Assembly: GCA_040285825.1 (NCBI GenBank)
Contig: JAUPSS010000006.1
Location: 62,001-126,000, forward strand
Length of the DNA stretch: 64,000 nt
DNA from: Eukaryota sp. TZLM1-RC
Taxonomy: Eukaryota; Protista; Metamonada: BaSk clade
Direction: 5' to 3'
Below the pieces are notes generated by a model. That model had not been told where the DNA came from, did not search any database, and saw only the letters and a program-made list of their open reading frames with translations. This document shows, piece after piece, positions 3 to 40,874 of the stretch. Position numbers and translations under genes: made by a program. Positions within the stretch are counted from its first letter, which is position 1, and each line of letters starts with the position of its first letter.

Positions 3-434
3 ATTCAAGCCACACTACTAGAACAAATAGTAGAAGCTGGCAAGGGTTTGGTATTGTTTAGTTGTAGTGGACATCACATCAAGGGTGACTTTAAATATGG
101 AGCATTCAAGGGTTTGAGTGGTCGTAAACCATTTGACTCTTTCATTGAACTTGGTAACTCTAACCAGAGTGATTTAATTATGAAATCAGTAAACTCTTTT
201 TCTTGTAAGTTTGGTGCAAAATACACTTCCATCAACCCTGAATTTCAAACAGTTTTTACCTTGAAAAATGGAGATCCTTTGGTGTTGAAGAGTGAATATA
301 GCAAAAGTAGAGTGGTAGATTTTGCTTCAGATGGTATTAGTACTGATCGTCATAGTAATGGATGGAAAAGCTCCACAGACGGTCATTTATTGCTAGCAAA
401 TTCAATAGTTTGGGTTTCTGGAAGGGATGACTAA
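3..434 (+). CDS. 3' end of hypervariable ThuA/GATase1-like family gene (copy A; 5' part outside window)
   Basis: Frame open from position 3 (IQATLLEQIVEAGKGLVLF...NSIVWVSGRDD*). Same scaffold as the C-termini of the genes at 14621, 31385 and 39100. Confidence 0.85.
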   Translation: MQATLLEQIVEAGKGLVLFSCSGHHIKGDFKYGAFKGLSGRKPFDSFIELGNSNQSDLIMKSVNSFSCKFGAKYTSINPEFQTVFTLKNGDPLVLKSEYSKSRVVDFASDGISTDRHSNGWKSSTDGHLLLANSIVWVSGRDD

Positions 435-14620: not shown

Positions 14621-16450
14621 ATGTCGTCTCTCCCAGTCCCTCCTTGCCGTGAAATCTCCCCCTCTGAACTCACCATTGACCTCGAAAACGGAAAAATCGG
14701 TCGAGGAGGTTTTGCTACCGTCTACGCCGCTCAATGGTTCTCCCACGACGTCGCCGTCAAACTCATAGCTCTCACAGATGAAGGGGAGACAAAGCTCAAG
14801 AAGGAGATCGGCCTCCTCTCCCTCCTCAACCATCCTGGCATTATCCGCGTCTATGGAGTCACATACCTAGACGGCAAGATGGGTATTGTCATGGATCGAG
14901 CCTCTTCTTCCCTCCACACACCCTCCCCTCTGTCTCGCACGTCCCTCTCGCACGCGATCTCCATTACCTCTGCCCTTCACTTCCTTCACTCTAATAACTT
15001 TATCCATAGAGATTTAAAGCCCCAGAACATTCTAATGGTTGATGGTCGTCCTAGAATCTCTGACTTTGGAACTTCCAAAATTATTGCTGATACCGCCACC
15101 CTCAACACCATCAATGCCATGACCCCTAAGTATGCTGCATTGGAAGCTTTTGATAATAATTCAAGCCAGGAAAGTGATGTCTATTCCCTAGGGGTAATTC
15201 TATATGAATTACTTACAAATAAAGTCGCTTTTGAGGGAATTAACTCTCAAATAGCTTTATTAGGAGCCAAATATAATGGTACTAAGTTACCATTTGATGT
15301 AACAACTCCTGTTTTATTACAAGAAATTATTAATAAATGCTTGGATAATGATCAATCAAAAAGGCCTGGCATTAACCAAATTTTGGAGGTGTTGAATGAT
15401 TTGACAAGTGAAGTTGGAGTTGATGAAAATTTGGTAATTGAAAATAATAATGATGAATTAATTCAAGAATTGCGTCGAGTTAATCTTAATTTAAGACAAG
15501 AAATTCAACAATTAGCTGAATTAAATCGTGAAAAAGATGAAGAAATAGTAGGTAAAGATCAAGAAATTCAAGAACTTTCTGCTGGAAATAGGCAATTAAA
15601 TAATATTATTGTAACAAAAGATCAAGAATTAGAGGAATTTTCTTCCAGAATTGAAGAATTAACCAGAAATAATTCCAATTTAAATCAACAATTAGGTGAA
15701 AAAGATCAACAAATTGAAGAATTAAATCAACAATTAGGTGAAAAAGATGAATTAATTAGCCAATTAACCACTCAAAATCAAGAATTAAAAAGTGAATTGC
15801 CATTTAAAAACCAAATAATTCAATTAAATTCACCATTAATTAGGGTTTGTTTGTGGGCTTATTCAATGTTTCATAATGACATCACCCAAAAAATTCAAAA
15901 AGGATTTAGGCAAAATTGGCCTAATCTTGAGGTACAAATTACTTCTACTGATGAACCAAATTTAAACAATATTGATAATTTTGATGTTGTTTTGTACAAT
16001 ACTCGTAGTTTAACCATTCAAGCCACACTACTAGAACAAATAGTAGAAGCTGGCAAAGGTTTGGTATTGTTTAGTAGTAGTGGAGGTAACATCAAGGGTG
16101 ACTTTAAATATGGAGCATTCAAGGGTTTGAGTAACGTGAAATCATTTTGCTCTTTCATTGAACTTGGTAACTCCAACCAGAATGATTTAATTATGAAATC
16201 AGTAAACTCTTTTTCTTGTATGTGGCGTGCAAAATACACTTCCATCAACCATGAATTTCAAACAGTTGCTACCTTGAAAAATGGAGATCCTTTGGTGTTG
16301 AAGAGTGAATATAACAAAAGTAGAGTGGTAGATTTTGCTTCGCATGGTCATAGTACTGATGGTCCTTTTGGTACTGGATGGAAAAGCTCCACAGATGGTC
16401 ATTTATTGCTAGCAAATTCAATAGTTTGGGTTTCTGGAAGGGATGACTAG
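14621..16450 (+). CDS. TKL-type Ser/Thr kinase - coiled coil - hypervariable ThuA/GATase1-like domain (copy C)
   Basis: GRGGFATV, VAVK, HRDLKPQN, DFG and DVYSLG kinase motifs. Heptad-rich linker. C-terminal FDVVL, LEQIVEAGKGLVLF, YNKSRVVDF and LLANSIVW motifs. ATG at 14621. Confidence 0.9.
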   Translation: MSSLPVPPCREISPSELTIDLENGKIGRGGFATVYAAQWFSHDVAVKLIALTDEGETKLKKEIGLLSLLNHPGIIRVYGVTYLDGKMGIVMDRASSSLHTPSPLSRTSLSHAISITSALHFLHSNNFIHRDLKPQNILMVDGRPRISDFGTSKIIADTATLNTINAMTPKYAALEAFDNNSSQESDVYSLGVILYELLTNKVAFEGINSQIALLGAKYNGTKLPFDVTTPVLLQEIINKCLDNDQSKRPGINQILEVLNDLTSEVGVDENLVIENNNDELIQELRRVNLNLRQEIQQLAELNREKDEEIVGKDQEIQELSAGNRQLNNIIVTKDQELEEFSSRIEELTRNNSNLNQQLGEKDQQIEELNQQLGEKDELISQLTTQNQELKSELPFKNQIIQLNSPLIRVCLWAYSMFHNDITQKIQKGFRQNWPNLEVQITSTDEPNLNNIDNFDVVLYNTRSLTIQATLLEQIVEAGKGLVLFSSSGGNIKGDFKYGAFKGLSNVKSFCSFIELGNSNQNDLIMKSVNSFSCMWRAKYTSINHEFQTVATLKNGDPLVLKSEYNKSRVVDFASHGHSTDGPFGTGWKSSTDGHLLLANSIVWVSGRDD

Positions 16451-16750
16451 TAAACTTGACTTTTTTCTTTAGGTTTAATTTGAATTATTTCGGCTTTTTT
16501 AATATTGTTTTATTCAATCAAAAGTGTTTGGTTCTTTAAATTTCTTTTACAATTTTATCGTCAATTATTGTGGATAATCTCGCCCGAATAAAACTATGAT
16601 TTGTCGAAACTTAGACACAAATATTAATGAAGAAATGGACAATAAAATAGTTTTGGTACACGCATTACACTTGTCCAAAGTCTAGATTGGTTGCTATTTT
16701 CAATTAAATTGTAACAATTTATTAAAAACATTTTATATAAACAGCAATAA

Positions 16751-17077
16751 TTTTTTTTTCCAAGATTTATTTTATTTAAATTTAATTTTAATCTAAACCT
16801 ATAAATCAACATCTAAAAAATCCATCTCTCCCAGAACAAAAACACTAGATGCAACTCTCTCATAGTGAGATCCAAGAGAAAGCAAAGCATCAGAAACCAT
16901 CTTCAACATCCCCTTAAAAATAGAAAACACAATTCTATTTTGCCAAAACAATCTGTTGAAATTTCTGCCAGTTCTTCTCTTTACAATCATTTCAAAATCA
17001 TCCAAAAAACGTAAAGCAGTTGGTGCAAGTGAACCAAAAAGGGAAAATACAAATGGATACAAATTGTATTTTGCATG
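16751..17077 (-). mobile_element. 5'-truncated CRE-like retrotransposon 3' end with short poly(A)
   Basis: Near-identical to 26750-27027. T-run at 16751. AGCAATAA on both sides. Absent from the paralogous flank at ~38800. Confidence 0.8.
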
Positions 17078-17383
17078 AAATATAGCAATAAATATCTTTA
17101 AACGTCTATACCTTATATGAACGTTTTTTTTGACACTTTGGGTATCTTTACTTTTTCAAGGAACATGATATTTTTTAAGCGGAATAACACAATTTTTTTT
17201 AATCAAAATGCAATACCTTGTCTTTGTTCCAACTGATGTGATCAATTGTGAAATGATTTATTAACAATTGAGCCAATCTTGATTATGTCACAATTTGCAA
17301 ATGAAGTTTAAGTTTAGCAAACTACTACAATCTGAAATTGTCAAAAGATGTTCAACATAACTGAAAATTGATTACTCGTGATT

Positions 17384-18121
17384 ACCTATGGGCAAAAATT
17401 CCCCCATCTGTCCATAGTTGCACAAAGAGTTACTCCCGGTCACGGGAGCTACCGGTTCTGCTTCGATAACTGAGCAGTAGTGGTCAGCTCTTGATTTTCA
17501 GCTTACAGATCACCGTTTGAACATGTCCAAAGCGGTGTTGGATAATGTGATGAACATTTATTTTAATACAACACTACAAACCAGGGATCCAAAGTCCTGT
17601 TCTTTATTAACGCTCAACCAAGTAGAGGAAGATGTGGTTAAAAACTTTGAAGAGGTTGAAAGATGGTCCAGTCAACGACAGGTGGTAGAACCAACTTTTG
17701 AACAAGAAGACTTACAGGGACTGTTTGCCGACGAAATTGAGGGAATTTGTCTCAGAGAGCAAGAAGATGATGGTGATGATGAAGTACTAGGACACGATAC
17801 AGCAGGAACAGTACGATTGAGTGGGTCAGGATTGTTGTTTGAAGAGGGTACTTCTGTGGTTGGGGAGTTATCTCCAAAACAAAAGCGAGTTAGGTAGATT
17901 AGGTATGATGGTAGATTAGTTCTCCTACAGGGCTTATGTAATGTAGCCTTATTTCTATTAAACAATAACTGTGATGTCTTCTAATCAGATATTGGCGAGT
18001 TGTTTGATCATGATCTCTAGTGGTGGTAATATTGGTAATATACGTGTCATGACGTCATGACAAAAGGCTCTAAATTGTAATCTTCAACTATGGATTTGAA
18101 CTATTTTTGCAAATTAAACAC
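17384..18121 (+). repeat. Inserted copy of the hAT 3' end plus kinase-gene leader (inverted copy of ~33165-33905)
   Basis: Near-identical to the reverse complement of 33165-33905. Flanked by a 31-bp direct repeat (17349-17379 and 18151-18181). Confidence 0.8.
18045..18062. promoter_or_regulatory. Perfect 18-bp palindrome TGTCATGACGTCATGACA (CRE/ATF-like core)
   Basis: Self-complementary. Second copy at 33222-33239. Confidence 0.4.
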
Positions 18122-18374
18122 AAAAGATGTTGTCAAAAGATGTTGTCAAATGTTCAACATAACTGAAAATTGATTACTCGTTTGAATAAACAAGAAGTGT
18201 GGATGTCTATGGAATCGTAATATCAATGCTGTTCTTTATATGATTCATGTTGTGGATCGGTATATCAAAGGAAATGAAATTCCTCAAGATTTGAAAAGAT
18301 CAACTTGATTCATTTCATCTTCATATACCATTAATCTCAACAGGTTACTACATTTTAGACCCCTCAGCCCTTGA

Positions 18375-19091
<717 letters not shown>

Positions 19092-19485
19092 TTTTGTTTT
19101 AAATGTTTTTATGTTTGGAAATTACAAAATTCAAAATGCTTTTTTGCAAACATATGAAAAGGAAAATGATAAATGTGAAATAATGGACATTAACAGCTGA
19201 AACTACACAATTTCTTGGCAAAAAAGACAAGGAATCTTCGCATGTCCAATTAACCTTAATGTTTGTCAAAGAACAGTAGTTTAGGTCAAATAGAAAGTGA
19301 TGACTTCACTAGTGGGGTACAAACGCATCTTGTGCTGGTAATTCATACATTTGAATGAATTTATCAACGCTTATAGACTTTGAAAGTGGGAAAGGAATAA
19401 CCACCAACTGTTTATCTGAAGTAGATTTTGAATCAAAGTTCTTTGCGACAGAGCTTCACATGAAAGCAGTCCTCAAATAGAATAT

Positions 19486-19606
19486 TGTAGGTATCTCACT
19501 AGTAAGTACCTAAGTATATAGAATAACATTAAATAAAATTATCTTTATCTTAACCCGCCTTAACTAACCCACATATACACAGCTAGCATAATGCCTAACG
19601 GCAACA
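19486..19606 (+). repeat. 5' LTR of Gypsy element
   Basis: Direct repeat of 25654-25774 with 3 mismatches. Confidence 0.92.
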
Positions 19607-22600
19607 ATAATTATTGTGCGTCACAGGCACATCAAACAGCAAACAGTAACAGCGCTGTAAACGACAAAAAGATGTCTGGGGTATGTCAGACATCTTTCAG
19701 AGGAGACCCTTCTAACCCTCCTCTTCACATTATTTGGAGTACAATGAGTGCTCCAACAAAGGAAACGAGTACCCCTCCTTCCTCAACGAGTTCGGATGTA
19801 GTTCATCCCACTCCTAGTCAAACGAGTTCGAGTGTTTCACACTCCACTCATGGAACGTTGAGTTCGGGTGCAACCCACCCCACTCCCAACATAGACGAGA
19901 GTTCGAGTATTTCACACTCCACTCATGGTACGACGAGTTAGGGTGCAACCCACCTCACTCCACATTTATTTAGTTCGGGTCAACACCCCACTATTATTCA
20001 TACGAGCGGAGATCCTCGACTCCCTCCTCCAAATCCGAGTTCGGGTCAAAACCCCACTCCTAACCTAACTCTTCCGGAGGTAATCCCTCCCAACAACAAT
20101 GCCCATTCAACGGCTACCACAGCCTTGACTACGGCCAAAGTCTCGCAGGATAAACCTCCTGCCACTAGCCCAGAGTTAGAGGCGCTTCTCGCCACTTTCT
20201 CAAAAGAAGAAAATGAGAAACAGGAGCCAACAGACTTTGTGGAGTCTCTCCCTTCAGATACGTCCCTGTACCCAGACTTAGAAAACTGTGTTTCGGTACA
20301 AACCTTAAACGAGACCTTAGAAGGATTCAGGGAAGTTCCCCTCACCTCACAAGTTCGTAAAAACTCTATAGAGCTTCTTGACAATGAGAGCAAGGAGTTG
20401 TCGGGTAGACCTGCTGAACGCAGAATACGACTATCCCCACTAGACTCCTTTTATAAATCCATCATGTCCAAGCCTCGCGCTGACAGATTCGATTTTATCG
20501 GAAAAAAGGCCACCCTCGACATATATAACTCTAGAATACGGTGGTTGGAGGTCATGGAGTATGGTCGAGTCTTCTCTAACAATTTGGATGGACCTGAGAA
20601 CATACACCTCCTCCCAGACTGGTTTAGGCCAGGTCTGGACAAAATTTATGAAGTCAACAGCATTTCTGGAGTGGATTATACGGTAGTAAGAGAGGTTTAC
20701 GAATACTACCCTTCGTCATCAAACCCTGATCTCGTTGAGATGAGACCCGCATCTCAGCCGTTCAGGCTAATTTTCGTCGAACAAGGAGTCACCTTCAAAC
20801 GAGATCATGCCAACATGAAAACGGCAGTCATCTCCACCTATAGGTCTCCCCCCAATCATCACAATGTACAAATTGGGGACACTTGGGTAGATAACAAGGC
20901 TTTCGCCTTCACCCCAATACTAGGTATAGAGGATACGCCTTTTCAAAGCATTAGACCTTTCAGGCCATCCATTCAACTCAACATTCAAGAGGAATCGAAA
21001 CCTCTTCAAAAACTACAAATTGACCAACTACCGCAGCCTGGTAATCAGGACATTTCCATGGACGTCCTCACTATCCAACCATCGGACTCATCTGTCCCAA
21101 TGGAAGAATCGACCTCACATCAAACAGGTCCAGGATTGACCAGACAAAATCTCTCCTCATTTCGATCAGGAACATTAACCGGAGTCCATGATCCACGTCA
21201 AGTTCTTGACTTAAATCTACAATCTCACGTTGGATACCACTATAAAACAAAGGCTGTAGAACACGATACGCTCCATGAGCCCCCCAACAGGCATCAGCAA
21301 CTTGGCTTTCACCGAGCCCTTGTTCGAAGAATTCTGTAAAGAGAGCTATTGGAAGGACAAGCTAGTGAGCTTCCCCAAATTAACAAGGAAGGTGCGAAAT
21401 GATTTATTATCATGGATGAAGGTTGCACAAAATAGGGATACGGTCCAGCTATTGAGGAAAGCTGCATCCAGACCCAAAATAGAAACAGGTGATTTTCACA
21501 CCTCAGCCGGAAAAAAGAGAACAAGCCAACCAGATTCATCCACCCCCAACCTTAAGAAAGAACAACACTACAGAGGAGGCCAAAAGTTCTGTACTTTTTG
21601 TCAGAAACCAGGCCATGTAATTACAGAATGTGAAGATCCCAGGTGCACCAGATCTCTGGTTCCACTAAATCAACGAAGAAGCGCCGGCAGAAGTAGAGGC
21701 CGAGGAAGACCATTCAGAGGTAGTTATGATAGTTTCAAAAATGTTCATAGAGGCCATAGTAGAGGCTAAGGTAGACATAGGGGCCGAGGTGGCCGTGGTA
21801 CGAGAGGAAATAAGCATCGTACATATATGTTTCATATACACCGATCATCGCACGCTCCAGCTCCCGAATTGAGCCATACTTATACAACTAGCCAATCAGA
21901 ACATTCAGCTCAAGCATCCCTCTTAAATCCACTCTCTTTCGGTAATGATAATAAAGTAGATAAATATTTGAGTTTAAACAGTTTAGAAAGAGATTTATAC
22001 AATCGAGCAGGTGAATCTGCACCTTGTATGAACCACAACAGATCCAAGCAGCCTCAGTTCTTAGAGCTTCAGGTTAGAATCAACGATACGGTCTTAAAAG
22101 GCATGATAGACACAGCTGCATTTTGTTCTGTCATTTCCCTCGACCTAGCAAATCGGTGTTCAATGTCCATAAATGAAAACGATATAACACAATTCATCCC
22201 TGCTAGCAATGTATCAACGAATTCGCTTGGGAGTGCACAAGGCATTCTGACGTTCAATGTTGGCAGCATCGCGAACCAAGTATCAATAAACCATACTCTC
22301 CCCATTATACCAGGTTCGAACAAATTTTTAATTGGGGTAGACATGTTACAACAACTTGGGCTACTGACATCTGACCGTTTAGTTATTTTACTAGACGAAG
22401 AGCGCCGCACCCTGCTAAATGCTGAAGCCATTTTTGATAACAGAATTAAAACTCACCAAATTGGCCACGTAGAATCAACTTCTTGCAGCGAAGTAGATTT
22501 TACTCAGCAATTAGATAAATCTGGATGTGAGATTAATTTAGATGATAGTGAGTATAATAAGAGTTTGTCTGATATATTAGCTCAATACAAGGACTAATTC

Positions 22601-23744
22601 AGCGAAAAGCCCAGTAAAGATGGAATCGATTGTCCACCTATGACGATCCCCTTCTACAATACTAATACAATTGTACACAAACCAGCTCGGGGCCTCAACT
22701 CAAAGAAATTACAAATAGCCAATCAGATTTTTGATGAATTGATTGAAATGGGCTATGCAATTGAATCGAACTACAAGTTCAGTTCCCCAATAGTATTAGT
22801 GTTATACCCTGATGATCGAAAACCTAGGTTGACGGGCGATTTCAGTGGTAAAGATGGAGTTAACGCTCATACAATTCCGGTCGAGTCTAACTTACCATTA
22901 ATTTCAGATGTTTTGGAATTTCTGAGTCAGGCCAACTTTACTGCCACTTTGGATTTCCCAAAAGCTTTTTGGCAAATGAAAGTAGCCGACGAAGATGTTG
23001 AAAAGACATCTATTTCTATTCCTGGCAGATCTATTATGTTTAAAAGGGCATGCTTCGCACTAAAGAATATCCCAGCGATTTTTCAAAATGTAATGATAGA
23101 AATTTTTCAAATAGAAGGAGTATATATCTACATCGACGACATTATCATAATAGGATCAACACGTCAAGAATTCTTTGACAGAAAACAGAGGGTACTGCCA
23201 TGAGCAAGGAGTAGAAGAGTCAACATTGGATTGAGAAAATGTAAATTCGTTACTGACAAACAATCAATTGACATTTTAGGCAGCACTTTCCAATTCAAAC
23301 AACGAAAAATTAGCAAAGAACCAGTAAATGCTTTAATAAACATACCTGCTCCAAAAACTATCAAGGAAGTACGGTCATTAGTTGGCTCAGTCAATTTCAT
23401 AAGAGATTGGCTTCCAAATATTTCACAACTAATAGCACCCATAAATGAGCTAATTAAGCACAAACAACGTCGTGTAAATTGGGAAGCCAAACACGATCAT
23501 CTATTAGATCAAATAAAACAACTGATTATTAATCACATGCCTCTGGAATTACCTTCACCAGACAAACGCATTCTGATTAGCACCGATGCATCTGACATCG
23601 CAGTAGGAGGAGTCATTTGGCAAGAAATCGCACCTTATGCACCCATTGGAACTGCATTAAAAGATAGGAAAGTAACACCAATTTTCCTTTTATAGTAGGA
23701 TTTTAACCGATACTGAAAAGCGTTGGTCTACTTTACAAAAAGAA

Positions 23745-25625
23745 TTGTATGCGATACTATTAATACTAACAGAAAGTCATCTGGAAAGCTTTCTCATTAC
23801 TAGACATCTGACTATTTTCACAGATCACCGGAATATTGCATTCCTCGCCACGGCTCCTGAAAAGAACAGAATCGTCAAAAGATGGTTACTTATCTCATCA
23901 GAATTTGATTTTGATATCGTACACGAAAAAGGAGAAGACAATCACTGGACTGACATGATGTCAAGAAACATTGACACAAATTTAGAAAATCCGGAAATAA
24001 ATCACATCAACTACCCACATGATCCCTTTTGGCACGGTGAAATACCACCCCCTGATGACGATTCTGATTATGAAGACCCAGATCCAATCCACATTTTCGA
24101 ATTAGCAAAGCACCCAGATTTGCCCATTTTTTCAAATTGGCTCTCAAAAGTTAGATCAGAGCAACAACTAGTCATAAGCAATAATGATCCATTATTCAAA
24201 AACGCTACACTATGCAAAAACACAGAAATCTGGTTAAATAATAATAATAAAATGATAATCCCGACCAAACTAAGAAAAACGGCACTCAACCTAATACACG
24301 GTTTAACCCAATCAGGCCACCCTAGCATAAACAAAAGTCTTCATAAACTTTCCAAAAGCGATTTCTACTGGCCAAACATGAGAAAAGATCTCATCAAACA
24401 TATAGAACGTTGCCCTACTTGCCAAAAAACTGCACCAGTAAAGCAATCAAAGACACCCTCAACTGGTTCCCTGTGGGCTAATCGCCTTTTCGCAAGATTA
24501 AACGTGGATACAATTGGACCACTCAATAAAGACAACAACGATAATAAATATTTACTAGTTTTCGTCGATTCATTTACAAGGTATACAATACTTGTACCTT
24601 TACAAGAACTTAATGCCTTAGAAGTAGCAGATGCTTTGATATGGTACGTCTGCGCTATTTTTGGCATACCTATGTCTATACATAATGACAATGGCCCTGA
24701 GTTCGCCAACGAAATATTTAATTTGCTTTGCCAAACAATGTCAATTGAAGTGTCTAAATCAATTCCTTACCATTCTGAAAGCAATGGATTAGTTGAAAGA
24801 AAACATCGAGATGTGATACAATGTATAAGGAAATTATTAATAGATTACAACGACTATGATTCATGGTCCACATATGTACCTATAACTCAATTATTAGTTA
24901 ATTCAACCAAAAGTAGAATCACAAATCACACTCCATATGAACTGATGTTTGGGTCATCTATCAGCCCAAGATCAGATCCTGCTAACATCCTAGGAGGCAT
25001 TTTCGATTTCGAATCCAATGTACCACTTTTGCAAGACCTCAAATTTAAGAATGAACGTCTTCAAAAAAGATGGGAAGAAGCAGAGCATCAGCAACTATTA
25101 AAAACACCCAGTCATACGAAAAACATAGATGAAAATACATTTAATATTGGTGACTATATTCTTCGAAAGACTAAACAACCTGATAAATTGCACGGATCTT
25201 GGTTAGGCCCATATCTGGTTTTAGAAACCCCTTCCAACTCCACCTTATTAATAAAGAACCTGACGACTGGTGAACAAACAAAGGTATCAAAAAGGGACTG
25301 TAAAATTTACAACGCTGACGATCCTAACGATGTCGATCTACTTAGGGCCATCGCAGCCACAGATTCAGGTAAACATGTCATCGAAGAAATCCTTGACGAG
25401 TATAATACTGCTCAAGGACCCTTCTGTACTGTAAGATGGTTTGGTGGAGATACTACCGAGGAACCACTCCATTCTATCAGATATTCAGAAGCGTATCAAC
25501 GATTTAATAAGAAACCAAATAAAAGAAAACGTAAATCTATTAAATCCAACAACGCAGCTCGGGCTCTCCCCGTGCATCAGCAAAAGCGTTATCCGCAAAG
25601 GAAGCGGAAGAACAACTGTAAATAA
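23745..25625 (+). CDS. Gypsy pol C-terminal part: RNase H end, integrase, chromodomain
   Basis: FTDHRN, GHP..CPTC, VDSFTRY, DNGPEF, SNGLVER, GPY and IEEIL..VRW.G..TEEP. Confidence 0.9.
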   Translation: MYAILLILTESHLESFLITRHLTIFTDHRNIAFLATAPEKNRIVKRWLLISSEFDFDIVHEKGEDNHWTDMMSRNIDTNLENPEINHINYPHDPFWHGEIPPPDDDSDYEDPDPIHIFELAKHPDLPIFSNWLSKVRSEQQLVISNNDPLFKNATLCKNTEIWLNNNNKMIIPTKLRKTALNLIHGLTQSGHPSINKSLHKLSKSDFYWPNMRKDLIKHIERCPTCQKTAPVKQSKTPSTGSLWANRLFARLNVDTIGPLNKDNNDNKYLLVFVDSFTRYTILVPLQELNALEVADALIWYVCAIFGIPMSIHNDNGPEFANEIFNLLCQTMSIEVSKSIPYHSESNGLVERKHRDVIQCIRKLLIDYNDYDSWSTYVPITQLLVNSTKSRITNHTPYELMFGSSISPRSDPANILGGIFDFESNVPLLQDLKFKNERLQKRWEEAEHQQLLKTPSHTKNIDENTFNIGDYILRKTKQPDKLHGSWLGPYLVLETPSNSTLLIKNLTTGEQTKVSKRDCKIYNADDPNDVDLLRAIAATDSGKHVIEEILDEYNTAQGPFCTVRWFGGDTTEEPLHSIRYSEAYQRFNKKPNKRKRKSIKSNNAARALPVHQQKRYPQRKRKNNCK

Positions 25626-25653
25626 TTTTAATTAAGAAAACGGGAGAAGGTAG

Positions 25654-25774
25654 TGTATGTATCTCACTAGTGAGTACCTAAGAATATAGAATAACATTAA
25701 ATAAAATTATCTTTATCTTAACCCGCCTTAACTAACCCACATATACACAGCTAGCATAATGCCTAACGGCAACA
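25654..25774 (+). repeat. 3' LTR of Gypsy element
   Basis: Preceded by purine tract AAGAAAACGGGAGAAGGTAG and followed by the ATAT TSD. Confidence 0.92.
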
Positions 25775-26717
25775 ATATGACCAATCAAGAATGATTAAAC
25801 CACCAAATTCATGAGTGGAAAATATTGAACATTAAGCCACAGAAAACCATAATGGTAATAGGGTGTTAATAAATGAGTATTCCAATAACCTAAGTGGTGG
25901 TAATTGCTTCGAAACCTTTTATGTACTGATACCGTGTTCTTGGAAGACAAGACAAAGTATGACTAATGATCATGTGATGCTACACGTGATACTTACCAAA
26001 ACCGGAAGGTAGTATTCAGCATTAGTATCAGTATTTGGCAAGACAAAGTACGACACTAATAATGGCCACTATTATTTGCAAGACAAACCTACGAGATAGC
26101 TAACAATAGGTGTGGATTTTCCTTTAACAGAGTATCAGAGTAATTGTTAATCCTGTTATCGTTGATTGCGAACCAACAGGATATACAAGGTATGAAAAAT
26201 AAGGAAAATACAACACAATCCAGAGGTGTTGAACTAAGAAGAATTCTGGCAAATGCTGGTATAAAATAAACTTGGTAGACGAGTATCGTACCAGTAAGAG
26301 ATGTGCTTCTTGTGTTGAGGATCATCACGAATGAGATACCAAATGCGGTGAAAAAGTCAAAGATTTAAATGCGACTAGGTGTTTTAATTTGATTGTTTCT
26401 TGAATATACATCCCCTGAAAAAATAATTTGTAAATTAAATAAATAAACTGCTTTTGCTGCTCTTACTGCATGTGTTTGTGTAGATGATGATGTGATGAAT
26501 TTTGTTCTATTTAAACAGTATTTATTTAGTATTTATTTGATACAATTTGTATCAAATTGACAAACATTATTGATAAATATTCAAATGGTTATCTTTAAAT
26601 AGAACAACACTGCACTTAGTCAGCTTCAACTGAAAACAAAAGTCTTTTTAACAACATTATGTGACAAGACAGTTTGCTCAAATCGAAGTCACAGGTTTTG
26701 GCCAATCACACTAATTA

Positions 26718-27723
26718 TTTTTTTTAGTAACAACAATTTTATTCTAAACCTATAAATCAACATCTAAAAAATCCATCTCTCCCAAAACAAAAATACTAGA
26801 TGCAACTCTCTCATAGTGAGATCCAAGAGAAAGCAAAGCATCAGAAACCATCTTCAACATCCCCTTAAAAATAGAAAACACAATTCTATTTTGCCAAAAC
26901 AGTCTGTTGAAATTTTTGCCAGTTCTTCTATTTACAATCATTTCAAAATCATCCAAAAAACGTAAAGCAGTTGGTGCAAGTGAACCAAAAAGGGAAAATA
27001 CAAATGGATACAAATTGTATTTTGCATGCTGTAGACTGGCCAATTTGGACAAAGGTTCATTGTATTTTTTGAATTTAAAATTTTCAGCATTTGAAAGGGG
27101 ATTATGAATTTCAGAATTAACAAGCCTTTCATTTGAGGCATTACAAGGATCAACAGACATTACATCCAATAAAATGAAGCTTCCATCTAATCCAGGTAAT
27201 ATGACATCACCTCTATTATTCTTATGAAAATCATTTTCAGCATCAAACAGATTTGACAACAAAGGTTCCAAGAAGGATTCAATTCTATGAGATTTACACA
27301 TACAATATAACTGGTCTCTTACAGCATCATGAACCTTGCTTCTAAAAATAATAAAATGTTTACAATTTAACAAATGAGTAGTTGTAATTTCTGGAGAACA
27401 TTTACAAATTTAATTATGAGGTAAATTATCAGGCCAGATAAAGGAACGAAATCTCATATTCAGAGTCCAAGCAGAATCGGATAAGAGAGTACCATAAACT
27501 TGTGGAATTGTTGTTACTAAGGCAGAAGAAGTACTGTCACACATATCTTGTAAAAGATTTGCAAAAGCGGGATTCTTTTTCTTGGCCAAGCCAAGTCTAA
27601 CATCAAAATCCAAGCTTTCAAAAATCTTTGACAATTTTTGTTGAAGCTTTTTACAGCAAAACTGTAAATTAAATAGAGATCGGTTTGGAATTATCCGGTA
27701 ATATAGACCAAGTATGGCCGCAT
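26718..27723 (-). mobile_element. 5'-truncated CRE-like non-LTR retrotransposon (Zn knuckle + RLE endonuclease)
   Basis: HLLNC, HDAVRD, RGD..D and FWQNRIVFSIFKG motifs. T-run tail. TSD CACTAATTA at 26709-26717 and 27724-27732. Confidence 0.85.
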
Positions 27724-28344
27724 CACTAATTAAAGTGTTGAATACATAATTCAAATTTTTTTTGTGAAGTTTGAAATTATTCATCGAAATCCTGAGCTCT
27801 CTGATTCAGAAATCAACTCCGAGACTCTACAAGACTGTAATCATTCTAAGTGGATTTTGTTGATTAAAAAGTCATCTTAGCAACTTTCACTTACAGTTCT
27901 GTTGCAAAAAATGTTGAACTTGACTTGGATAAACTTTGATAGAAAAACCCCTTTTGTAAAATATGAACTGATAATTGATAATTCACAAACTTAAACCAAT
28001 CATATTTTGTGTCTTTGTAATAGTTTCTTTTTTCTTTGATATTGAACTTCCTTCTGAACTGATCCGCTGCATGAATCATTCCTACTAAATTACTAAATTT
28101 ACTTAGTAACAAACAGGTTTCATCTAGCAACTTCCACTTATAAGAATATGGTCTGAGGATACGAAATGACAACACATACACACTCTAACATCTAAATACA
28201 GAGCCACTACAATTAAAAAGAATTCCACTTACCATTAACGGGAAACCGTTGGCCAAAACAAATCAAAAATAATATTCATTTATTTTTCCACTAAAATATC
28301 CAATATAAAGAATTTTTCCCTCTGAAAATTAATTCATTTCCAAG

Positions 28345-30675: not shown

Positions 30676-30949
30676 GAGTTAAGGAGTGGAAGGAGCGGGA
30701 GGTGGATAGATTGGTTGATTGATGAAACAAATTCAATTCACCATTATTTTTGGGCTAATCTCTCTCTGAATTTCAGCAAAAATAGACGTCTGCAGAACCA
30801 CCAACTTTTTGGTGCAACAAGCCTAAACGTGTTGAATATATTTAGATGTTGTATTGTGAAGAAAAGCAGTTGAAAGCAAAAAATTACTAAAATTTTCAAG
30901 CGTAAGAATATATTAATTGGAATAGACAACCAATAACAATTAATTTAAG

Positions 30950-31262
30950 TTATCAAGTGTAAATAAAGGTGTAGTGTGGAACAAACAATAATGGTAAAGA
31001 AGTTTATTAGGTTTATAAGTTGCGTATCGTGCTTTCAAAATCTTGTTCAGTTCACCATTAATTGGAGGTACAATCATTTCGAGAAATTTTCAAAGTACTT
31101 CTGCCCACGCAAGGGTCAATCAGTTGTGAAATCCATAATAATTTGTTTGGAATCATAAAATAATTTATAAAGATCACCACATGAATCACCCTTAATCATT
31201 GAAGAAAAGTTGGTGATTCTGATCATTAGGGTTAATTGACAAGTGATAAACTTGAAATACTT
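30950..31262 (-). repeat. Copy of the BTB-like fragment found downstream of family copies A and B
   Basis: Reverse complement matches ~2110-2425 and 641-831. Confidence 0.75.
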
Positions 31263-31384
31263 TAATGAAGAATTGCTGGTTTAATTGTTAAACAATAAAG
31301 AAATTGAAAAACCAATTTTATTAATTGAATAAATATATTAAAAAAGCCGAATAATTAAAATAACACCTGACAAGGTCAAGTTTA

Positions 31385-33133
31385 TTAGTCATCCCTTCCA
31401 GAAACCCAAACTATTGAATTTGCTAGCAATAAATGACCATCTGTGGAGCTTTTCCATCCACCAGGAAAAGGACTATCAGTACTACAACCATCTGAAGCAA
31501 AATCCACCACTCTACTTTTGTTATATTCACTCTTCAACACCAAAGGATCTCCATTTTTCAAGGTAGCAACTGTTTGAAAATCAGGGTTGATGGAAGTGTA
31601 TTCTGCACCTCGATTACAAGAAAAAGAGTTTACTGATTTCATAATTAAATCATTCTGGTTAGAGTTACCAAGTTCAATGAAAGAGCCAAATGGTTTACCA
31701 TAACCACTCAAACCCTTGAATGCTCCATATTTAAAGTCACCCTCGATGTTACGTCCAAAACAACTAAACAATACCAAACCCTTGCCAGCTTCTACTATTT
31801 GTTCTAGTAGTGTGGCTTGAATGGGTAAACAATTCGTATTGTATAAAACAACATCAAAATTATCAATATTGATTAAATTTGGGAATTGAGTAGAAGTAAT
31901 TTGTACCTCAAGATTAGGCCAATTTTGCCTAAATCCTTTTTGAATTTTTTGGGTAATGTCATTATGATAACTTGAATGAGCACACAAACAAACCCTAATT
32001 AATGGTAAATTTGATTGAATTATTTGGTTTTTAAATTGCAATTCTCTTGTTAATTCTTGAATTTGAGTGGCTAATTGGGTAATTAATTCATTTTGTTGAC
32101 CTAAAAGATGATTTAAATTGGAATTTTTTCTGGTTAATTCTTCAATTGTAGCATTTAATTGCCAATTTTCAGCAGAAAGTTCTTGAATTTCGTCATCTTT
32201 GCCTACTATTTCTTCATTTTCTTCACGATTTAATTCAGCTAATTGTTGAATTTCTTGTCTTAAATTGAGATTAACTCGACGCAATTCATGAATTAATTCA
32301 TCATTATTATTTTCAATTACCAAATTTTCATCAACTCCAACTTCACTTGTCAAATCATTCAACACCTCCAAAATTTGGTTAATGCCAGGCCTTTTTGATT
32401 GATCACTATCCAAGCATTTATTAATAATTTCTTGTAATAAAACAGGAGTTGTTTTATCAAATGGTAACTTAGTACCATTATATTTGGCTCCTAATAAAGC
32501 TATTTGAGAGTTAATTCCCTCAAAAGCGACTTTATTTGTAAGTAATTCATATAGAATTACCCCTAGGGAATAGACATCACTTTCCTGGCTTGAATTATTA
32601 TCAAAAGCTTCCAATGCAGCATACTTAGGGGTCATGGCATTGATAGTGTTGAGGGTGGCAGTATCAGCAATAATTTTGGAAGTTCCAAAGTCAGAGATTC
32701 TGGGACGACCATCAACCATTAGAATGTTCTGGGGCTTTAAATCTCTATGGATAAAGTTATTAGAGTGAAGGAAATGAAGGGCAGAGGTAATGGAGATCGC
32801 GTGCGAGAGGGACGTGCGAGACAGAGGGGAGGGTGTGTGGAGGGAAGAAGAGGCTCGATCCATGACAATACCCATCTTGCCGTCTATGTATGTAACTCCA
32901 TAGACGCGGATAATGCCAGGATGACTGAGGAGGGAGAGGAGACTGATTTCCTTCTTGAGCTTGGTCTCCCCTTCGTCAGTGAGAGCAATGAGTTTGACGG
33001 CGATGTCGTGGGAGAACCATTGAGCGGCGTAGACGGTAGCAAAACCACCTCGACCGATTTTTCCGTTTTCGAGGTCAATGGTGAGTTCAGAAGGGGAGAT
33101 TTCACGGCAAGGAGAGACTGAGAGAGATGACAT
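31385..33133 (-). CDS. TKL kinase - coiled coil - hypervariable ThuA/GATase1-like domain (copy D)
   Basis: Paralog of 14621-16450. Intact ORF, ATG at 33133. Confidence 0.9.
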   Translation of the reverse strand: MSSLSVSPCREISPSELTIDLENGKIGRGGFATVYAAQWFSHDIAVKLIALTDEGETKLKKEISLLSLLSHPGIIRVYGVTYIDGKMGIVMDRASSSLHTPSPLSRTSLSHAISITSALHFLHSNNFIHRDLKPQNILMVDGRPRISDFGTSKIIADTATLNTINAMTPKYAALEAFDNNSSQESDVYSLGVILYELLTNKVAFEGINSQIALLGAKYNGTKLPFDKTTPVLLQEIINKCLDSDQSKRPGINQILEVLNDLTSEVGVDENLVIENNNDELIHELRRVNLNLRQEIQQLAELNREENEEIVGKDDEIQELSAENWQLNATIEELTRKNSNLNHLLGQQNELITQLATQIQELTRELQFKNQIIQSNLPLIRVCLCAHSSYHNDITQKIQKGFRQNWPNLEVQITSTQFPNLINIDNFDVVLYNTNCLPIQATLLEQIVEAGKGLVLFSCFGRNIEGDFKYGAFKGLSGYGKPFGSFIELGNSNQNDLIMKSVNSFSCNRGAEYTSINPDFQTVATLKNGDPLVLKSEYNKSRVVDFASDGCSTDSPFPGGWKSSTDGHLLLANSIVWVSGRDD

Positions 33134-33221
33134 GAGGTAGAATAGTGGAGGGGAAGTGTTGAGTTTAATTTGCAAAAATAGTTCAAATCCATAGTTGAAG
33201 ATTACAATTTTTACAGCCTTT

Positions 33222-33239
33222 TGTCATGACGTCATGACA
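33222..33239. promoter_or_regulatory. 18-bp palindrome with TGACGTCA core ~90 bp upstream of kinase copy D
   Basis: Perfect palindrome. Position is consistent with a promoter element. Confidence 0.45.
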
Positions 33240-33386
33240 TGTATATTACCAATATTACTACCACTAGAGATCATGATCAAACAACTCGCCAATATCTGAT
33301 TAGAAGACATCACAGTTATTGTTTAACAGAAATCAGTCTACATCACATAAGCCCTGTAGGAGAACTAATCTACCATCATCCCTAAT

Positions 33387-35554: not shown

Positions 35555-35607
35555 GGTCGATTAAATTTAGTTGAATTGTCAATGCTGGACTTAATTGATT
35601 GATTAAT

Positions 35608-35635
35608 TAGGCAGTATGACGCTGTATTTTGACAT
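35608..35635 (-). pseudogene. Truncated DPM1 5' fragment (MSKYSVILP) from segmental duplication
   Basis: Identical to 18378-18405. Upstream sequence also matches the DPM1 leader. Confidence 0.8.
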
Positions 35636-35736
35636 GAATCAAGGGCTGAGGGATCTCAAGGGTAGTAACCTGTTGAGATTAATGGTATATAAAGATGAAA
35701 TGAATCAAGTTGATGTTTTCAAATCATGAGGTCTTT

Positions 35737-38392
35737 TTTTGAGAGACTTTTTATTTATTTAAACAAAAATGTTAAAAACTAAAAATCTATTTCCTCAAAC
35801 TCCACATCTACCATGGAAAATTTACCTAACCTAAAAAAATTCACAACCTTTTCTTCATAATATCTTCCTAGTGATAACAACGAGCTAGAAACAAGGCTAT
35901 GCATCCCCTTAAAAATGGAAAATACAATTCTTTTTTGCCTAAAGGTACGGTCAAATATTCTTCCAGTTCTATTTTTGACAATAGTAAAGAAATCATCTAG
36001 AAATGATAAAGCGGTTTTACCTAAGGTTCCAAATAAAGAAAAAGCAAAAGGACAACGAAGGTATTGAGTATGTGAGTTGGAATTCAGATTATTGATTTTT
36101 TCTGTGTACTTGATAATTTTTGCTTCTTCAGCTCTTCGTAAAGGTGAATTATAAGATTGTGCCAGTTTTTCATTTGAGCTGTTTGATACATCAGTAGATC
36201 TGACATCAATAATAATCATTGATCCATTGACGGTAACTAGCACATCACCACGGCTGTCACCAAAAGAATTTTTGTCAGATTCATCAGCCAGATTTGAAAG
36301 CAAAGGTTCTAAAAAAGATTCAAGCCGGTAGGACTTAAACATACAATAGAGCTGATCACGAACTGCATCATGCACTGTTGATCTAAAAGTAATAAATCGA
36401 TTACAATTAAATAAATGGGTTGGAGTGACAGTCTTTCCACATTTACAAATAACTCCATGAGGAAGATTATCATGCCAAATAAAAGATCGAAGACGCATAG
36501 ATAACAAAAAGCAAGGGTCATTGAGAAACAAACCATAAACTCTTGGAACTTGATTAATCAAACAAGAGGCAGAACTATCACAAACATCCAGTAAAAAATT
36601 TGCAAAAGCGGGATATTTTTGCTTGACCATGCCAAGACGTCCTTCATAATCCAAGCCTTCAAATATTACTGTCAGTTTTTGTTGAAGTTTCTTCACACAA
36701 TACCTTAAATTAACTAAATTTCGTGGAGGAGTATCTTGAACTGAGTCGGGAAAGCATTGACACCAAATTTCTGGTGCAATTTTATTAATAGCAACATCAA
36801 GGTCATACAAATATTTTGAAAATGATGGATTAAGCAAATGAATATCTTCAGGGAAACGATTAAGAAATTCAAAAATAAAATTTTTACCACCACCAACAAA
36901 AGCTGCTTGACAAAGAATCGAGGATTTGGTAAAGCCAACACCACCAAATTGTGAAGAAGAGAACAAGTGAGCTCGAATAAGCTCAGGATTCACTTCTAAT
37001 AAGGAAGCAAAGAAAGTTGCACGGAGTTGATTAAATGATCGGCAGAAATCAATAGACAATGAAGGTGCTGTCGACCTCAATAAATAATTTAAATATATTT
37101 AATTTAAATAAGTAATTTTTCCGGAGGAACAAATTTTTAAAATAAAAAACATGATATGTTTTTCTATTTCTAATTCCGAAATTAATTGAAGTTCAGTGCC
37201 AAGTTTAGCACCAATTTCGTTAACATTTCTAGTTATTTCATCAACATTTCCTAACCAACATCCTAGAAAACGAAAAGCTTCTTGTGAATAATTTGTAAAA
37301 GGAATTTTACAATTATTAATTTTGAACTCTTTGAATTTATTACCAATTAATAAACATTTTTTGGGATTCAAGTGAAGGCCAATAATTTCATATTGTTCAG
37401 CAAATTCATTTGAAGCTTTTTGAACAACATCAAATGCACCGATAAGGGAGATGTCTTCCATATAACCCACAAATTTGAGAGAAGGGTATTTTTCATTAAT
37501 AGCAATCAAAGATTCTTGTATTGCTAAGCAAAATAATAATGGGCCCAAAGGATCTCCTTGTTTTACACCTGATGAAGACTTGAGAGAAAAAACATCATAA
37601 ACTAATTCACTTGGTTTACCATAAAACAAATAGAAATAGCTTGATAGTTCAGGAAAATGTTTTTGAATTACTTCGTAGATTGCTTTTCTTTTTACACTAT
37701 TAAAAGCATTGCTAAAATCTAAATTGAAAATAAAATTGTTTCCTTTGGAGTTAAAGAACAAATCAGATGTAAGAGCAGCAACCGAAGCTCCATCAATCGT
37801 TTGAATACCAAATTGCAAAGGTGACAAAAATTTTCCAGCTTTTTTCACAATTCTGTTGAAAATAATTGAGGCAAACAAACGAGAGAGAGAGAGATTCACC
37901 AACAGCAATGGGACGAATTCCAGAGGGTTTAGATTCATTTCCAGGTTTAACTAAAGCAATAAGACGTGCAGCAGTAAGCTCATGTGAAGGCACGACTTTT
38001 AAAAAGACCAATTGTTGGAAATAGAATGCTAAATCATCTGCAATTTCGGGTGTTTTATTACAAGTGGTTTTTAAAATATCAAACGAAATTCCCGATGGTC
38101 CAGCAGCTTTACCTTTTGGTAATTTTTTAATTGCAGCAAGAACTTCTGAGGCATTTATTGGATTAGTAGACCAAAATTGACAAATATTGGGTTTTGGACA
38201 AATGAAATTTTCCTCAGGATGGAGCTTTTTCAATTTTTCAACTGTCTCAAGGGTTGGTTTAGCAATATCAGAGGAAAACAACGACTGCACTCCAGCACCA
38301 TATCTACCTCGAAGACAATTGTTTAACTTTTGGTATTGGATTTTGTTTATAAACAGCATTTTTGTTCACAAACGATTTCTTTTTTGCAAAAA
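35737..38392 (-). mobile_element. CRE-like non-LTR retrotransposon, most complete copy (RT + Zn knuckle + RLE), frameshifted and 5'-truncated
   Basis: KAAGPSG, IRPIAVGE, LDFSNAFN, QGDPLGP, YMED, FRFLG, CKC..H..C and RGD..D. 16-bp TSD AAATCATGAGGTCTTT at 35721-35736 and 38393-38408. Confidence 0.9.
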
Positions 38393-39099
38393 AAATCATG
38401 AGGTCTTTCGTTTCCATTGAGATACTGATCCACAACATGAATCATATTAAGAACAGCATTGTCATTACGATTCCATAGACATCCACACTTCTTGTTTATT
38501 CAAACGAGCGATCAATTTTCAGTTATTTTGAACATCTTTTGACAATTTCAAATTGTAGTAGTTTGCTAAACTTAAACTTCATTTGCAAATTGTGACATAA
38601 TCAAGATTGGCTCAATTGTTAATATAACAATTCACATTTGATCACATCTGTTGGAACAGAGACAAAATATAACATTTTGAATAAAAAACTATATTGTGTT
38701 ATTCCGCTTAAAAAATATCATGTTCCTTGAAAAAGTAAAGATACCCAAAGTCCCAAAAAAACGTTCATATAAGGTATAGACGTTTAAAGATATTTATTGC
38801 TATTTATTGCTATATATAAAAACTGTTTTTAATAAATTGTTACAATTTAATTGAAAATAGCAACCAATCTAGACTTTGGACTAGTGTAATGCGTGTACCA
38901 AAAATATTGTATTGTCCATTTCTTCATTAATATTTGTGTCTAAGTTTCGACAAATCATGGTTTTATTCGGGAGGGATTATCTACAACAATTGACGATTAA
39001 ATTGTAAAAAAATAATGAAATTGAAAAAAACACTTTATTAATTGAATAAAACAATATTAAAAAAGCCGAAATAATTCAAATTAAACCTCAAAAAGTTTA

Positions 39100-40824
39100 T
39101 TAGTCATCCCTTCCAGAAACCCAAACTATTGAATTTGCTAGCAATAAATGACCATCTGTGGAGCTTTTCCATCCACTACTATCACCATCAGTACTATAAC
39201 CATCTGAAGCAAAATCCACCACTCTACTTTTGTTATATTCACACTTCAACACCAAAGGATCTCCATTTTCCAAGGTAGCAACTGTTTGAAATTCAGGGTT
39301 GGTGGAAGTGTATTCTGCAACAAACTTACAAGAAAAAGAGTTTACTGATTTCATAATTAAATCATTCTGGTTAGAGTTACCAAGTTCAATGATAGAGACA
39401 AATGGTTTACAATCACTCAAACCCTTGAATGCTCCATATTTAAAGTCACCCTCGATGTTACCTCCACTACTACAACTAAACAACACCAAACCCTTGCCAG
39501 CTTCTACTATTTGTTCTAGTAGTGTGGCTTGAATGGTTGAACCAAAAGTATTGAACAAAACAACATCAAAATTATCAATATTGTTTAAATTTGGTCGATT
39601 AGTAGAAGTAATTTGTACCTCAAGGTTAGGCCAATTTTGCCTAAATCCTTTTTTAATTTTTTGGGTAATGTCATTATGAAGTCTTGAATCAGCCCACAAA
39701 CAAACCCTAATTAATGGTGAATTTGGTTGAATTATTTGGTTTTTAAATTGCAATTCACTTTTTAATTCTTGAATTTGAATGGTTAATTGGCGAATTAATT
39801 CATTTTGTTGACCCAATTGTTGATTTAAATTGGAATTATTTCTGGTTAATTCTTCAATTGTAGCATTTAATTGCCTATTTTCAGCAGAAAGTTCTTGAAT
39901 TTCTTCACCTTTTTCACGGTTTAATCCAGTTAATTGTTGAATTTCATGTCTTAAATTGAGATTAACTCGACGCAATTCTTGAATAAATTCATCATTATTA
40001 TTTTCAATTACCAAATTTTCATCAACTCCAACTTCACTTGTCAAATCATTCAACACCTCCAAAATTTGGTTAATGCTAGGCCTTTTTGATTGATCATTAT
40101 CCAAGCATTTATTAATAATTTCTTGTAATAAAACAGGAGTTGTTTCATCAAATGGTAACTTAGTACCATTATATTTGGCTCCTAATAAAGCTATTTGAGA
40201 ATTAATTCCCTCAAAAGCGACTTTATTTGTAAGCAATTCATATAGAATTACCCCTAGGGAATAGACATCACTTTCCTGGCTTGAATTATTATCAAAAGCT
40301 TCCAATGCAGCATACTTAGGGGTCATGGCATTGATAGTGTTGAGGGTGGCGGTATCAGCAATAATTTTGGAAGTTCCAAAGTCAGAAATTCTAGGACGAC
40401 CATCAACCATTAGAATGTTCTGGGGCTTTAAATCTCTATGGATAAAGTTATTAGAGTGAAGGAAGTGAATGGCAGAGGTTATAGAGATCGCGTGCGAGAG
40501 GGATGTGCGAGACAGAGGGGAGGGTGTGTGGAGGGAAGAAGAGGCTCGATCCATAACAATACCCATCTTGCCGTCTATGTATGTAACTCCATAAACGCGG
40601 ATAATGCCAGGATGATTGAGGAGGGAGAGGAGGCCGATCTCCTTCTTGAGCTTGGTCTCCCCTTCGTCTGTGAGAGCAATGAGTTTGACGGCGATGTCGT
40701 GGGAGAACCATTGAGCGGCGTAGACGGTAGCGAAACCACCTCGACCGATTTTTCCGTTTTCGAGGTCAATGGTGAGTTCAGAGGGGGAGATTTCACGGCA
40801 AGGAGGGACTGGGAGAGACGACAT
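39100..40824 (-). CDS. TKL kinase - coiled coil - hypervariable ThuA/GATase1-like domain (copy E)
   Basis: Paralog of copies C and D. Intact ORF, ATG at 40824. Confidence 0.9.
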   Translation of the reverse strand: MSSLPVPPCREISPSELTIDLENGKIGRGGFATVYAAQWFSHDIAVKLIALTDEGETKLKKEIGLLSLLNHPGIIRVYGVTYIDGKMGIVMDRASSSLHTPSPLSRTSLSHAISITSAIHFLHSNNFIHRDLKPQNILMVDGRPRISDFGTSKIIADTATLNTINAMTPKYAALEAFDNNSSQESDVYSLGVILYELLTNKVAFEGINSQIALLGAKYNGTKLPFDETTPVLLQEIINKCLDNDQSKRPSINQILEVLNDLTSEVGVDENLVIENNNDEFIQELRRVNLNLRHEIQQLTGLNREKGEEIQELSAENRQLNATIEELTRNNSNLNQQLGQQNELIRQLTIQIQELKSELQFKNQIIQPNSPLIRVCLWADSRLHNDITQKIKKGFRQNWPNLEVQITSTNRPNLNNIDNFDVVLFNTFGSTIQATLLEQIVEAGKGLVLFSCSSGGNIEGDFKYGAFKGLSDCKPFVSIIELGNSNQNDLIMKSVNSFSCKFVAEYTSTNPEFQTVATLENGDPLVLKCEYNKSRVVDFASDGYSTDGDSSGWKSSTDGHLLLANSIVWVSGRDD

Positions 40825-40874
40825 GAGGTAGAAGAGTGGAGAGGAAGTGTTGAGTTTAATTTGCAAAAATAGTT

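Follow-up and report, generated by a model that had tools for sequence, protein, structure and literature searches.

The 64,000-nucleotide stretch of DNA analyzed here (the window; positions 62,001 to 126,000 of contig JAUPSS010000006.1, assembly GCA_040285825.1) contains members of a protein family in which kinase, BTB or TRIM-like N-terminal parts are followed by a C-terminal domain of ~205 amino acids. We find that this family is real and strongly selected; it is apparently undescribed, and the fold of its C-terminal domain was not previously known in a TRIM-like recognition role. In the explanation that we favor, the domain, which has a class I glutamine amidotransferase (GATase)-like/ThuA fold, probably serves as a module for binding and not for catalysis. 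The source organism, Eukaryota sp. TZLM1-RC, belongs to Skoliomonas litria, of which it is the type strain; this metamonad is anaerobic, feeds on bacteria and lives in alkaline hypersaline lakes (PMC11603281). Its assembly was built from Nanopore reads corrected with Illumina data (10.1101/2023.05.03.539051). The start of the window was placed within the contig, and every close relative of the window copies carries a P9112_ gene name of this organism.

The kinase form is represented by three intact genes, copies C (14621..16450, + strand, 609 amino acids, P0001), D (31385..33133, − strand, 582 amino acids) and E (39100..40824, − strand, 574 amino acids, P0002). Each is a single open reading frame (copy C is intronless) encoding a kinase, a coiled-coil linker of 93–128 amino acids and the ~205-amino-acid domain. 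In copy C these parts lie on the + strand at 14621..15406, 15449..15829 (128 amino acids; 101 in D and 93 in E) and 15830..16447 (206 amino acids), while the domain occupies 31388–32008 in D and 39103–39720 in E. The N-terminal part is a protein kinase (Pkinase E~1e-43) with intact VAVK, αC Glu, HRD and DFG. TAK1 is the best PDB match of the copy E kinase (E 3e-32), and assignment from this best match alone would make the kinase group TKL-like. In the model of copy E, of which the kinase part is low-confidence, the linker forms one continuous helix of 88 residues (278–365). Because the strongest KD19 window in a hydropathy scan was ~1.1–1.2 and the N-terminus is polar, these proteins lack both a transmembrane segment and a signal peptide. 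A receptor-like kinase was considered and rejected, as the scan found neither the signal peptide nor the transmembrane helix of such a protein. An earlier note on this DNA, made from the letters alone, had likewise proposed a coiled-coil connection and no signal peptide or transmembrane segment. Its three intact genes and two partial open reading frames also stand, but neither of the partial copies (A and B) belongs to a kinase gene, as it had supposed (see below). Members of the same kinase family also occur without the domain, for example as a DUSP-coiled coil-kinase protein.

Copies C and E differ at 5 of 262 amino acids in the kinase and at 30 of 205 in the domain (Fisher p=1.6e-7), matching the approximate counts given earlier; the kinase, described then as invariant, is instead under purifying selection (omega 0.14, with no positive-selection signal in site models of six kinases, copy C included). 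To analyze selection on the domain, we fitted codon site models of our own implementation. For the five window copies these returned an omega of 11.1 on 14% of sites (twice the log-likelihood difference, 2dL, 70.5 for M1a/M2a and 70.8 for M8a/M8), and for six TRIM copies an omega of 7.5 (2dL 66.4), so the expectation of a dN/dS above 1 in the variable patches was borne out by M2a and M8 alike. The signal was kept after dropping codons near gaps (2dL 40.5, 34.4 and 55.4) and also with the intact kinase genes only. The TRIM N-terminal control was marginal (2dL 5.9, p=0.052). Recombination was detectable, with incompatibility test p values of 0.02–0.05 in the kinase/BTB clade and 0.0015 for whole TRIM genes; under simulated neutral evolution with heavy recombination (45 runs, the tree being changed every 20 codons), 2dL was at most 10.3.

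Circularity was avoided by defining the patches for each clade from the other clade. In the cross-defined patches dN/dS was 3.0 for the window copies (dN 0.25, dS 0.083) and 1.8 for the TRIMs, compared with 0.8 for the scaffold, and pairwise pN in the patches (0.22–0.26) exceeded gene-wide pS (0.07–0.08; p≤6e-5). The TRIM copies are 36% identical to the subfamily of the window copies, yet they are selected at largely the same positions, with 13 hot sites shared between the clades (Fisher p=3.7e-7). Synonymous sites have diverged somewhat less in the domain than in the N-terminal regions (p=0.04 for TRIM, p=0.25 for kinase), a weak hint of gene conversion. The term antibody-like used in the earlier note is overstated: germline paralogues have diversified by selection with some recombination, and neither the window nor the other S. 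litria loci analyzed showed any sign of a somatic or templated mechanism.

The variation is found in seven short patches, whose motifs as first quoted all match our alignment, and in-frame length changes are seen in three of them. On copy C (+ strand), patches 1 to 3 lie at 15860..15871 (domain residues 11–14, after strand β1), 15950..15955 (residues 41–42, after β2) and 16004..16009 (residues 59–60, after β3). Patch 4 (16076..16090, residues 83–87) follows β4 in the nucleophile-elbow region and, like patch 5 (16133..16150, residues 102–107), shows a 1-codon indel among copies. Patch 6 is at 16220..16228 (residues 131–133), and the length-variable patch 7 at 16343..16375 (residues 172–182), after the last core strand. 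In the model, patches 1–4 start 1–3 residues from the ends of strands 3–9, 34–40, 53–57 and 77–81, and patch 7 comes after strand 164–169. The parallel strands of a GATase-like fold end on one edge, which is the site of the GATase Cys and His-x-Glu. Patches 5 and 6 presumably sit on segments lining the same pocket, going by GATase motifs. Secondary structure and fold topology thus suggest that the variable loops surround the former active-site pocket. Hypervariability extends to the position that corresponds to the catalytic His region.

The domain was modeled with a mean pLDDT of 96.6 and has a flavodoxin-like α/β core of the class I GATase-like superfamily. Structural search of the model matched 2gk3 (Z 18.5, rmsd 2.4, 185 residues aligned), 3rht (17.7), ThuA-like 1t0b (15.6) and 4jqs (14.4), confirming the fold first proposed from motifs; the family profile reaches 4jqs and 2gk3 by sequence too. 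A PDB sequence search with a single domain gave no significant match, and no Pfam family scored above its gathering threshold with the Skoliomonas domains. The copy C domain reached 16.8 bits against DUF7408 (cut-off 27), 18 of the 92 members of the family matched ThuA with E≤0.01, and membership of ThuA (PF06283), DUF7408 (PF24157) or GATase1_like (PF07090) was rejected on these sub-threshold scores. An ESM Atlas feature search returned general GATase-like clusters only, and a BFVD structure search only distant GATase-fold matches. The elbow region aligns to the Gly-Gly of 2gk3; the kinase/BTB clade has Ser at this position, which varies in the other groups, and we take it to be the nucleophile elbow, in part from the GATase motif. 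Of 10 copies in the kinase/BTB clade, 8 have a Cys next to the elbow. Intact copy C and copy B have Ser in its place, and the TRIM, viral and bacterial homologues lack it. Across the domain alignment of all these groups no catalytic triad is conserved and no His-x-Glu is present. A class I glutamine amidotransferase enzyme was rejected on the unconserved elbow Cys and the missing His-x-Glu.

Framing the family around the kinase, as was done at first, proved too narrow, since one domain is swapped among kinase, BTB and RING-B-box proteins. Searches recovered at least 28 copies of the domain from S. litria and at least 6 from Skoliomonas sp. GEM-RC1. The domain follows this kinase in six copies; others follow two unrelated BTB families (30% identical) or RING-B-box-B-box-helical regions, the latter forming a sister subfamily with RING and two B-boxes (P0009–P0013, P0015, P0018 and P0019). 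It is almost always the C-terminal end of the protein, it is joined to the effectors through a coiled coil or helical stalk, and the kinase and RING/B-box parts are conserved while its loops vary. The TRIM-like paralogues P0019 and P0063 (GEM-RC1) have identical domains and differing N-terminal parts, a pattern that could reflect recent conversion, duplication or an assembly effect. The window also contains a RING-B-box-B-box-coiled coil-SPRY-like TRIM gene (57323–58663, −) and a partial second copy (60998–61836, −). The two share 71% identity in their SPRY-like regions, where substitutions and indels are grouped into short blocks, which suggests a parallel SPRY-based variable family.

The partial copies belong to the BTB form. 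Copy A (3..434, +) is the 3′ domain part of a frameshifted BTB-helical-coiled coil-domain gene. The full gene is found at locus L002 8684–10582 (window position 1 is L002 10149), starts ~1.46 kb before the window and has two frameshifts when the upstream DNA is examined. Copy B (824..1979, +; called as 1122–1979 at first) is a partial tandem duplicate of A with helical segment, coiled coil and domain, one frameshift near 1150 and an in-frame 66-nt duplication within the domain (1527–1658). The frameshifts are homopolymer-associated, and since two homopolymer sites keep the frame in only one of the two copies, residual assembly error in A and B is possible. Copy A, a BTB protein, is the nearest relative of the domain of kinase copy C (88% identity) and has the same coiled coil, indicating that a coiled coil-plus-domain cassette was exchanged recently between BTB and kinase effectors. 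Elsewhere in the genome (L006 4834–11077), an insertion bearing a reverse transcriptase (RT) splits a P0005-type BTB-domain gene, of which P0004 is the 3′ part.

Bacterial homologues of the domain are secreted or surface proteins. They often carry 2 to 4 or more domain repeats, are fused with Ig-like, dockerin, T9SS, PEP-CTERM or protease parts, and have undergone expansion in Phycisphaerales. In that order (L027–L103; P0079–P0147) they form clusters of paralogous ~720-amino-acid secreted proteins with three tandem copies. In three trees, all quick and unrooted, the Skoliomonas domains form one group (SH-aLRT 99–100), and together with environmental sequences they split from all bacterial rows (SH-aLRT 98–99). 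We claim no donor, since these are quick unrooted trees without an approximately unbiased (AU) test of alternatives. One environmental contig encodes RNase III and a helicase whose sole PDB match is NPH-I; others carry genes for DUF2738, an XPG-type nuclease and collagen fibres, and there the domain occurs in fusion with a lectin-like LamG domain. From this gene content we read the contigs as giant-virus-like (one sequence, P0044, is without genomic context), which would place the nearest kin of the Skoliomonas domains on giant-virus-like contigs in lectin/collagen-fibre clusters. On metagenome contigs L015–L025, LamG plus ThuA-like proteins occur among tandem collagen-fibre genes and could possibly be a virion attachment module. 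Homologues of secreted or virion type, with their Ig-like, dockerin, T9SS, PEP-CTERM and LamG parts, are consistent with a binding module. Because pN is well below pS in the viral homologues (pN/pS ~0.2–0.4, purifying selection), the fold is not inherently hypervariable. No relatives were found by IMG/VR scans with five queries or by a metagenome scan with the window domain.

Use of the domain by eukaryotes may be wider than Skoliomonas, judging from a cluster of the ESM Atlas named 'Btb (Poz) domain-containing 2a-related', which has 75 members (BTB 100%, BACK 44%, 500 amino acids). The C-terminal domain of this cluster matches ours with a TM of 0.82–0.83 (taxa not recorded); its naming resembles Anaeramoeba annotations. 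A word-based search for cluster members with the BTB-BACK-domain arrangement gave only bacterial proteins among the 120 matches listed. We tentatively suggest, as a possibility that we would not favor over its negation, that a surface-binding domain of giant viruses (or of a shared lineage) was moved to the cytosol by skoliomonads and became the base of a modular innate-immune repertoire in an arms race with viruses, with one hypervariable ThuA-fold sensor common to kinase, BTB and TRIM-like effectors and a parallel SPRY set. If true, this would represent both a new variable-receptor scaffold and the domestication of a viral gene for protist immunity.

As to function, we consider it more probable than not that these proteins are cytosolic sensors. 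The domain would be the interchangeable cytosolic recognition unit of Skoliomonas, analogous to B30.2/SPRY in TRIM proteins, and the coiled coil would dimerize the protein. Binding of the variable pocket to a repetitive, fast-evolving foreign surface in the cytosol would cluster the N-terminal modules, leading to trans-activation of the kinase or to ubiquitination in the TRIM and BTB forms. The target would most likely be a virus or a bacterium inside the cell, with its surface glycans or capsid as possible sites of binding. Gene duplication, selected point mutation, short in-frame indels and recombination, including cassette swaps between effectors, could give rise to new specificities. Several points weigh against this proposal. 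The site models (F3x4, NEB) used 5–6 sequences per test, and positive selection leaves the selective agent unspecified. The clustering of the loops comes from topology and not from coordinates. Lastly, several copies are broken, namely A, B and the retroelement-split P0004.

Other selective agents were also considered. An arms race with endogenous mobile elements, in which retrotransposon Gag/ORF1 particles are recognized and phosphorylated or ubiquitinated as capsids are by TRIM5, is unlikely: RT and integrase genes occur throughout the window and near many copies in a genome rich in non-LTR and Gypsy elements, but such proximity is expected for any duplicating family in a genome rich in transposable elements, and nothing ties the loops to their proteins. 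Less likely still is self/non-self or kin recognition of the fungal HET or Dictyostelium Tgr kind, in which Skoliomonas cells that have fused with or eaten others of their kind would use the domain to detect the polymorphic proteins of those cells. Such recognition would likewise pair selected loops with a conserved effector, and a cytosolic location fits HET-type systems; however, the diversity lies among dispersed paralogues of one genome on at least 6 contigs and is not shown as alleles, and restriction and degradation are the more usual tasks of TRIM-like and BTB effectors. We regard it as quite improbable that the domain is an enzyme or a small-molecule sensor (for a sugar or osmolyte), its paralogues having diverged in the range of substrates that they accept and not through conflict. 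Its fold is common to ThuA-like and GH42 middle domains and most kinase/BTB-clade copies keep the Cys beside the elbow, but the presence of Ser instead of that Cys in intact copy C and in B and its absence in other groups argue otherwise, as does hypervariability at the catalytic His region. An omega of 7–11 with a near-star phylogeny would also be atypical of metabolic tuning.

The remaining readings concern how the variation arose. Diversity driven by mutation itself, through DGR-like adenine-directed retrohoming (DGR, diversity-generating retroelement) or local hypermutation, could be suspected from the many RT genes nearby and from the third base, which does not change at 16 of the 23 codons that are hot in the window copies. 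Selection on non-synonymous changes yields the same third-base pattern, however, and only 12 of 26 hot codons of the TRIM copies keep the third base. Additionally, 21 of 51 variable patch nucleotides are without A in any copy, no copy is A-rich at variable sites (25–33%), and the patches are spread over ~520 nt with indels included. Because patch dS (0.083) equals kinase dS (0.089), there is no adenine bias and no template-like extra copy is present in the window or fetched loci, we consider such a process very unlikely. The least probable reading, to which we give hardly any weight, is assembly error or relaxed constraint in the surface loops of redundant duplicates. The Nanopore-based assembly (10.1101/2023.05.03.539051) and the homopolymer-associated frameshifts of A and B would permit it, but omega is significantly above 1 rather than equal to 1 (M8a vs M8 2dL 70.8), the changes are in-frame, non-synonymous and recurrent at homologous sites in an independent clade, and the flanks are distinct between copies.

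Additional features were noted around the copies. Window 35608–40878 (copy E plus flank pieces) is an inverted duplication of 14569–18405 (copy C plus flank), which also takes in the start of a neighboring glycosyltransferase-like gene, and a Cys-rich broken frame lies upstream of copy C (13440–13860). Decayed non-LTR pieces (RT plus a C-terminal zinc-knuckle/endonuclease-like open reading frame), several of them adjoining kinase copies, are found at window 35779–37938, 40923–41981, 26750–27784, 12670–13266, 49125–49730 and 55497–56042. A Gypsy-like element (integrase, RNase H; 19483–25777) lies between 127-bp direct repeats of 97% identity. Elsewhere in the Skoliomonas genome, a DUF4135 plus LanC-like (lanthipeptide synthetase-like) gene is present at L004 14572–17349 and a Cas12f1-like/TnpB gene at L012 14370–15503.

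How free-living protists recognize intracellular invaders is largely unknown, and this culturable flagellate offers a repertoire of at least 28 genes with the selected residues mapped. With a recognition role, the class I GATase-like fold would join the few scaffolds of variable recognition (Ig, LRR, SPRY, WD40/TPR/ANK and C-type lectin). The family also shows that a metamonad has proteins built on a TRIM-like plan, whose domains are shuffled between effectors of the kinase and ubiquitin kinds. Closeness to proteins of giant-virus fibre clusters suggests an origin route, as well as a function for an uncharacterized bacterial and viral domain family. A literature search with little coverage of subscription journals found no published description of the family or its architecture, in keeping with the earlier statement that no such receptor was known; the genome paper (10.1101/2023.05.03.539051) mentions neither kinases nor viruses.

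The Skoliomonas domains have the same fold as ThuA (PF06283), GATase1_like (PF07090), DUF7408 (PF24157), 2gk3, 3rht, 1t0b and 4jqs, with weak sequence similarity. Unlike the Pfam families, they are hypervariable, are fused to eukaryotic signaling and ubiquitin modules, and group with virus-like and secreted bacterial repeat proteins in a separate clade. The Atlas BTB cluster resembles them as a BTB protein with a matching C-terminal domain. DGR target proteins likewise combine a conserved scaffold with variable ligand-binding residues (putative ones in Skoliomonas) and often keep the third codon base; here, in contrast, the variants are germline paralogues without adenine bias, in patches over 520 nt with indels. 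A DGR was rejected, as no template repeat, adenine-specific variation or DGR RT was found in the window and fetched S. litria loci. Plant kinase-fusion and tandem-kinase resistance proteins couple a cytosolic kinase to a domain thought to bind a pathogen molecule, and the Skoliomonas proteins similarly join a cytosolic kinase to a non-kinase, putatively pathogen-binding domain. Plants integrate different decoys once each, whereas here one domain is diversified over many paralogues and a coiled coil joins the parts.

The closest likeness is to TRIM proteins. Membership of the TRIM-B30.2/SPRY family was rejected because the C-terminal domain is GATase-like and not PRY-SPRY, and the window copies were rejected as TRIM proteins because they have kinase or BTB instead of RING plus B-box(es). 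In finTRIM proteins, RING and B-box are conserved, the B30.2 loops are positively selected and the domain is shuffled between TRIM and NLR proteins (PMC2657112). Similar to TRIM5α and finTRIM (PMC2657112, PMC11281341), the Skoliomonas proteins form a cytosolic multigene family with a near-identical N-terminal effector, a coiled coil and selected C-terminal loops, and their C-terminal domain is shuffled between effector types that include TRIM-like members with RING and two B-boxes. As in TRIM-B30.2/SPRY restriction factors, selection is concentrated in the C-terminal loops while the N-terminus is conserved. In contrast to TRIM5α and finTRIM, the Skoliomonas family has a putative antiviral role, a unicellular metamonad host, kinase or BTB in place of RING in the window copies, and a recognition domain that is a class I GATase-like α/β fold rather than a β-sandwich.

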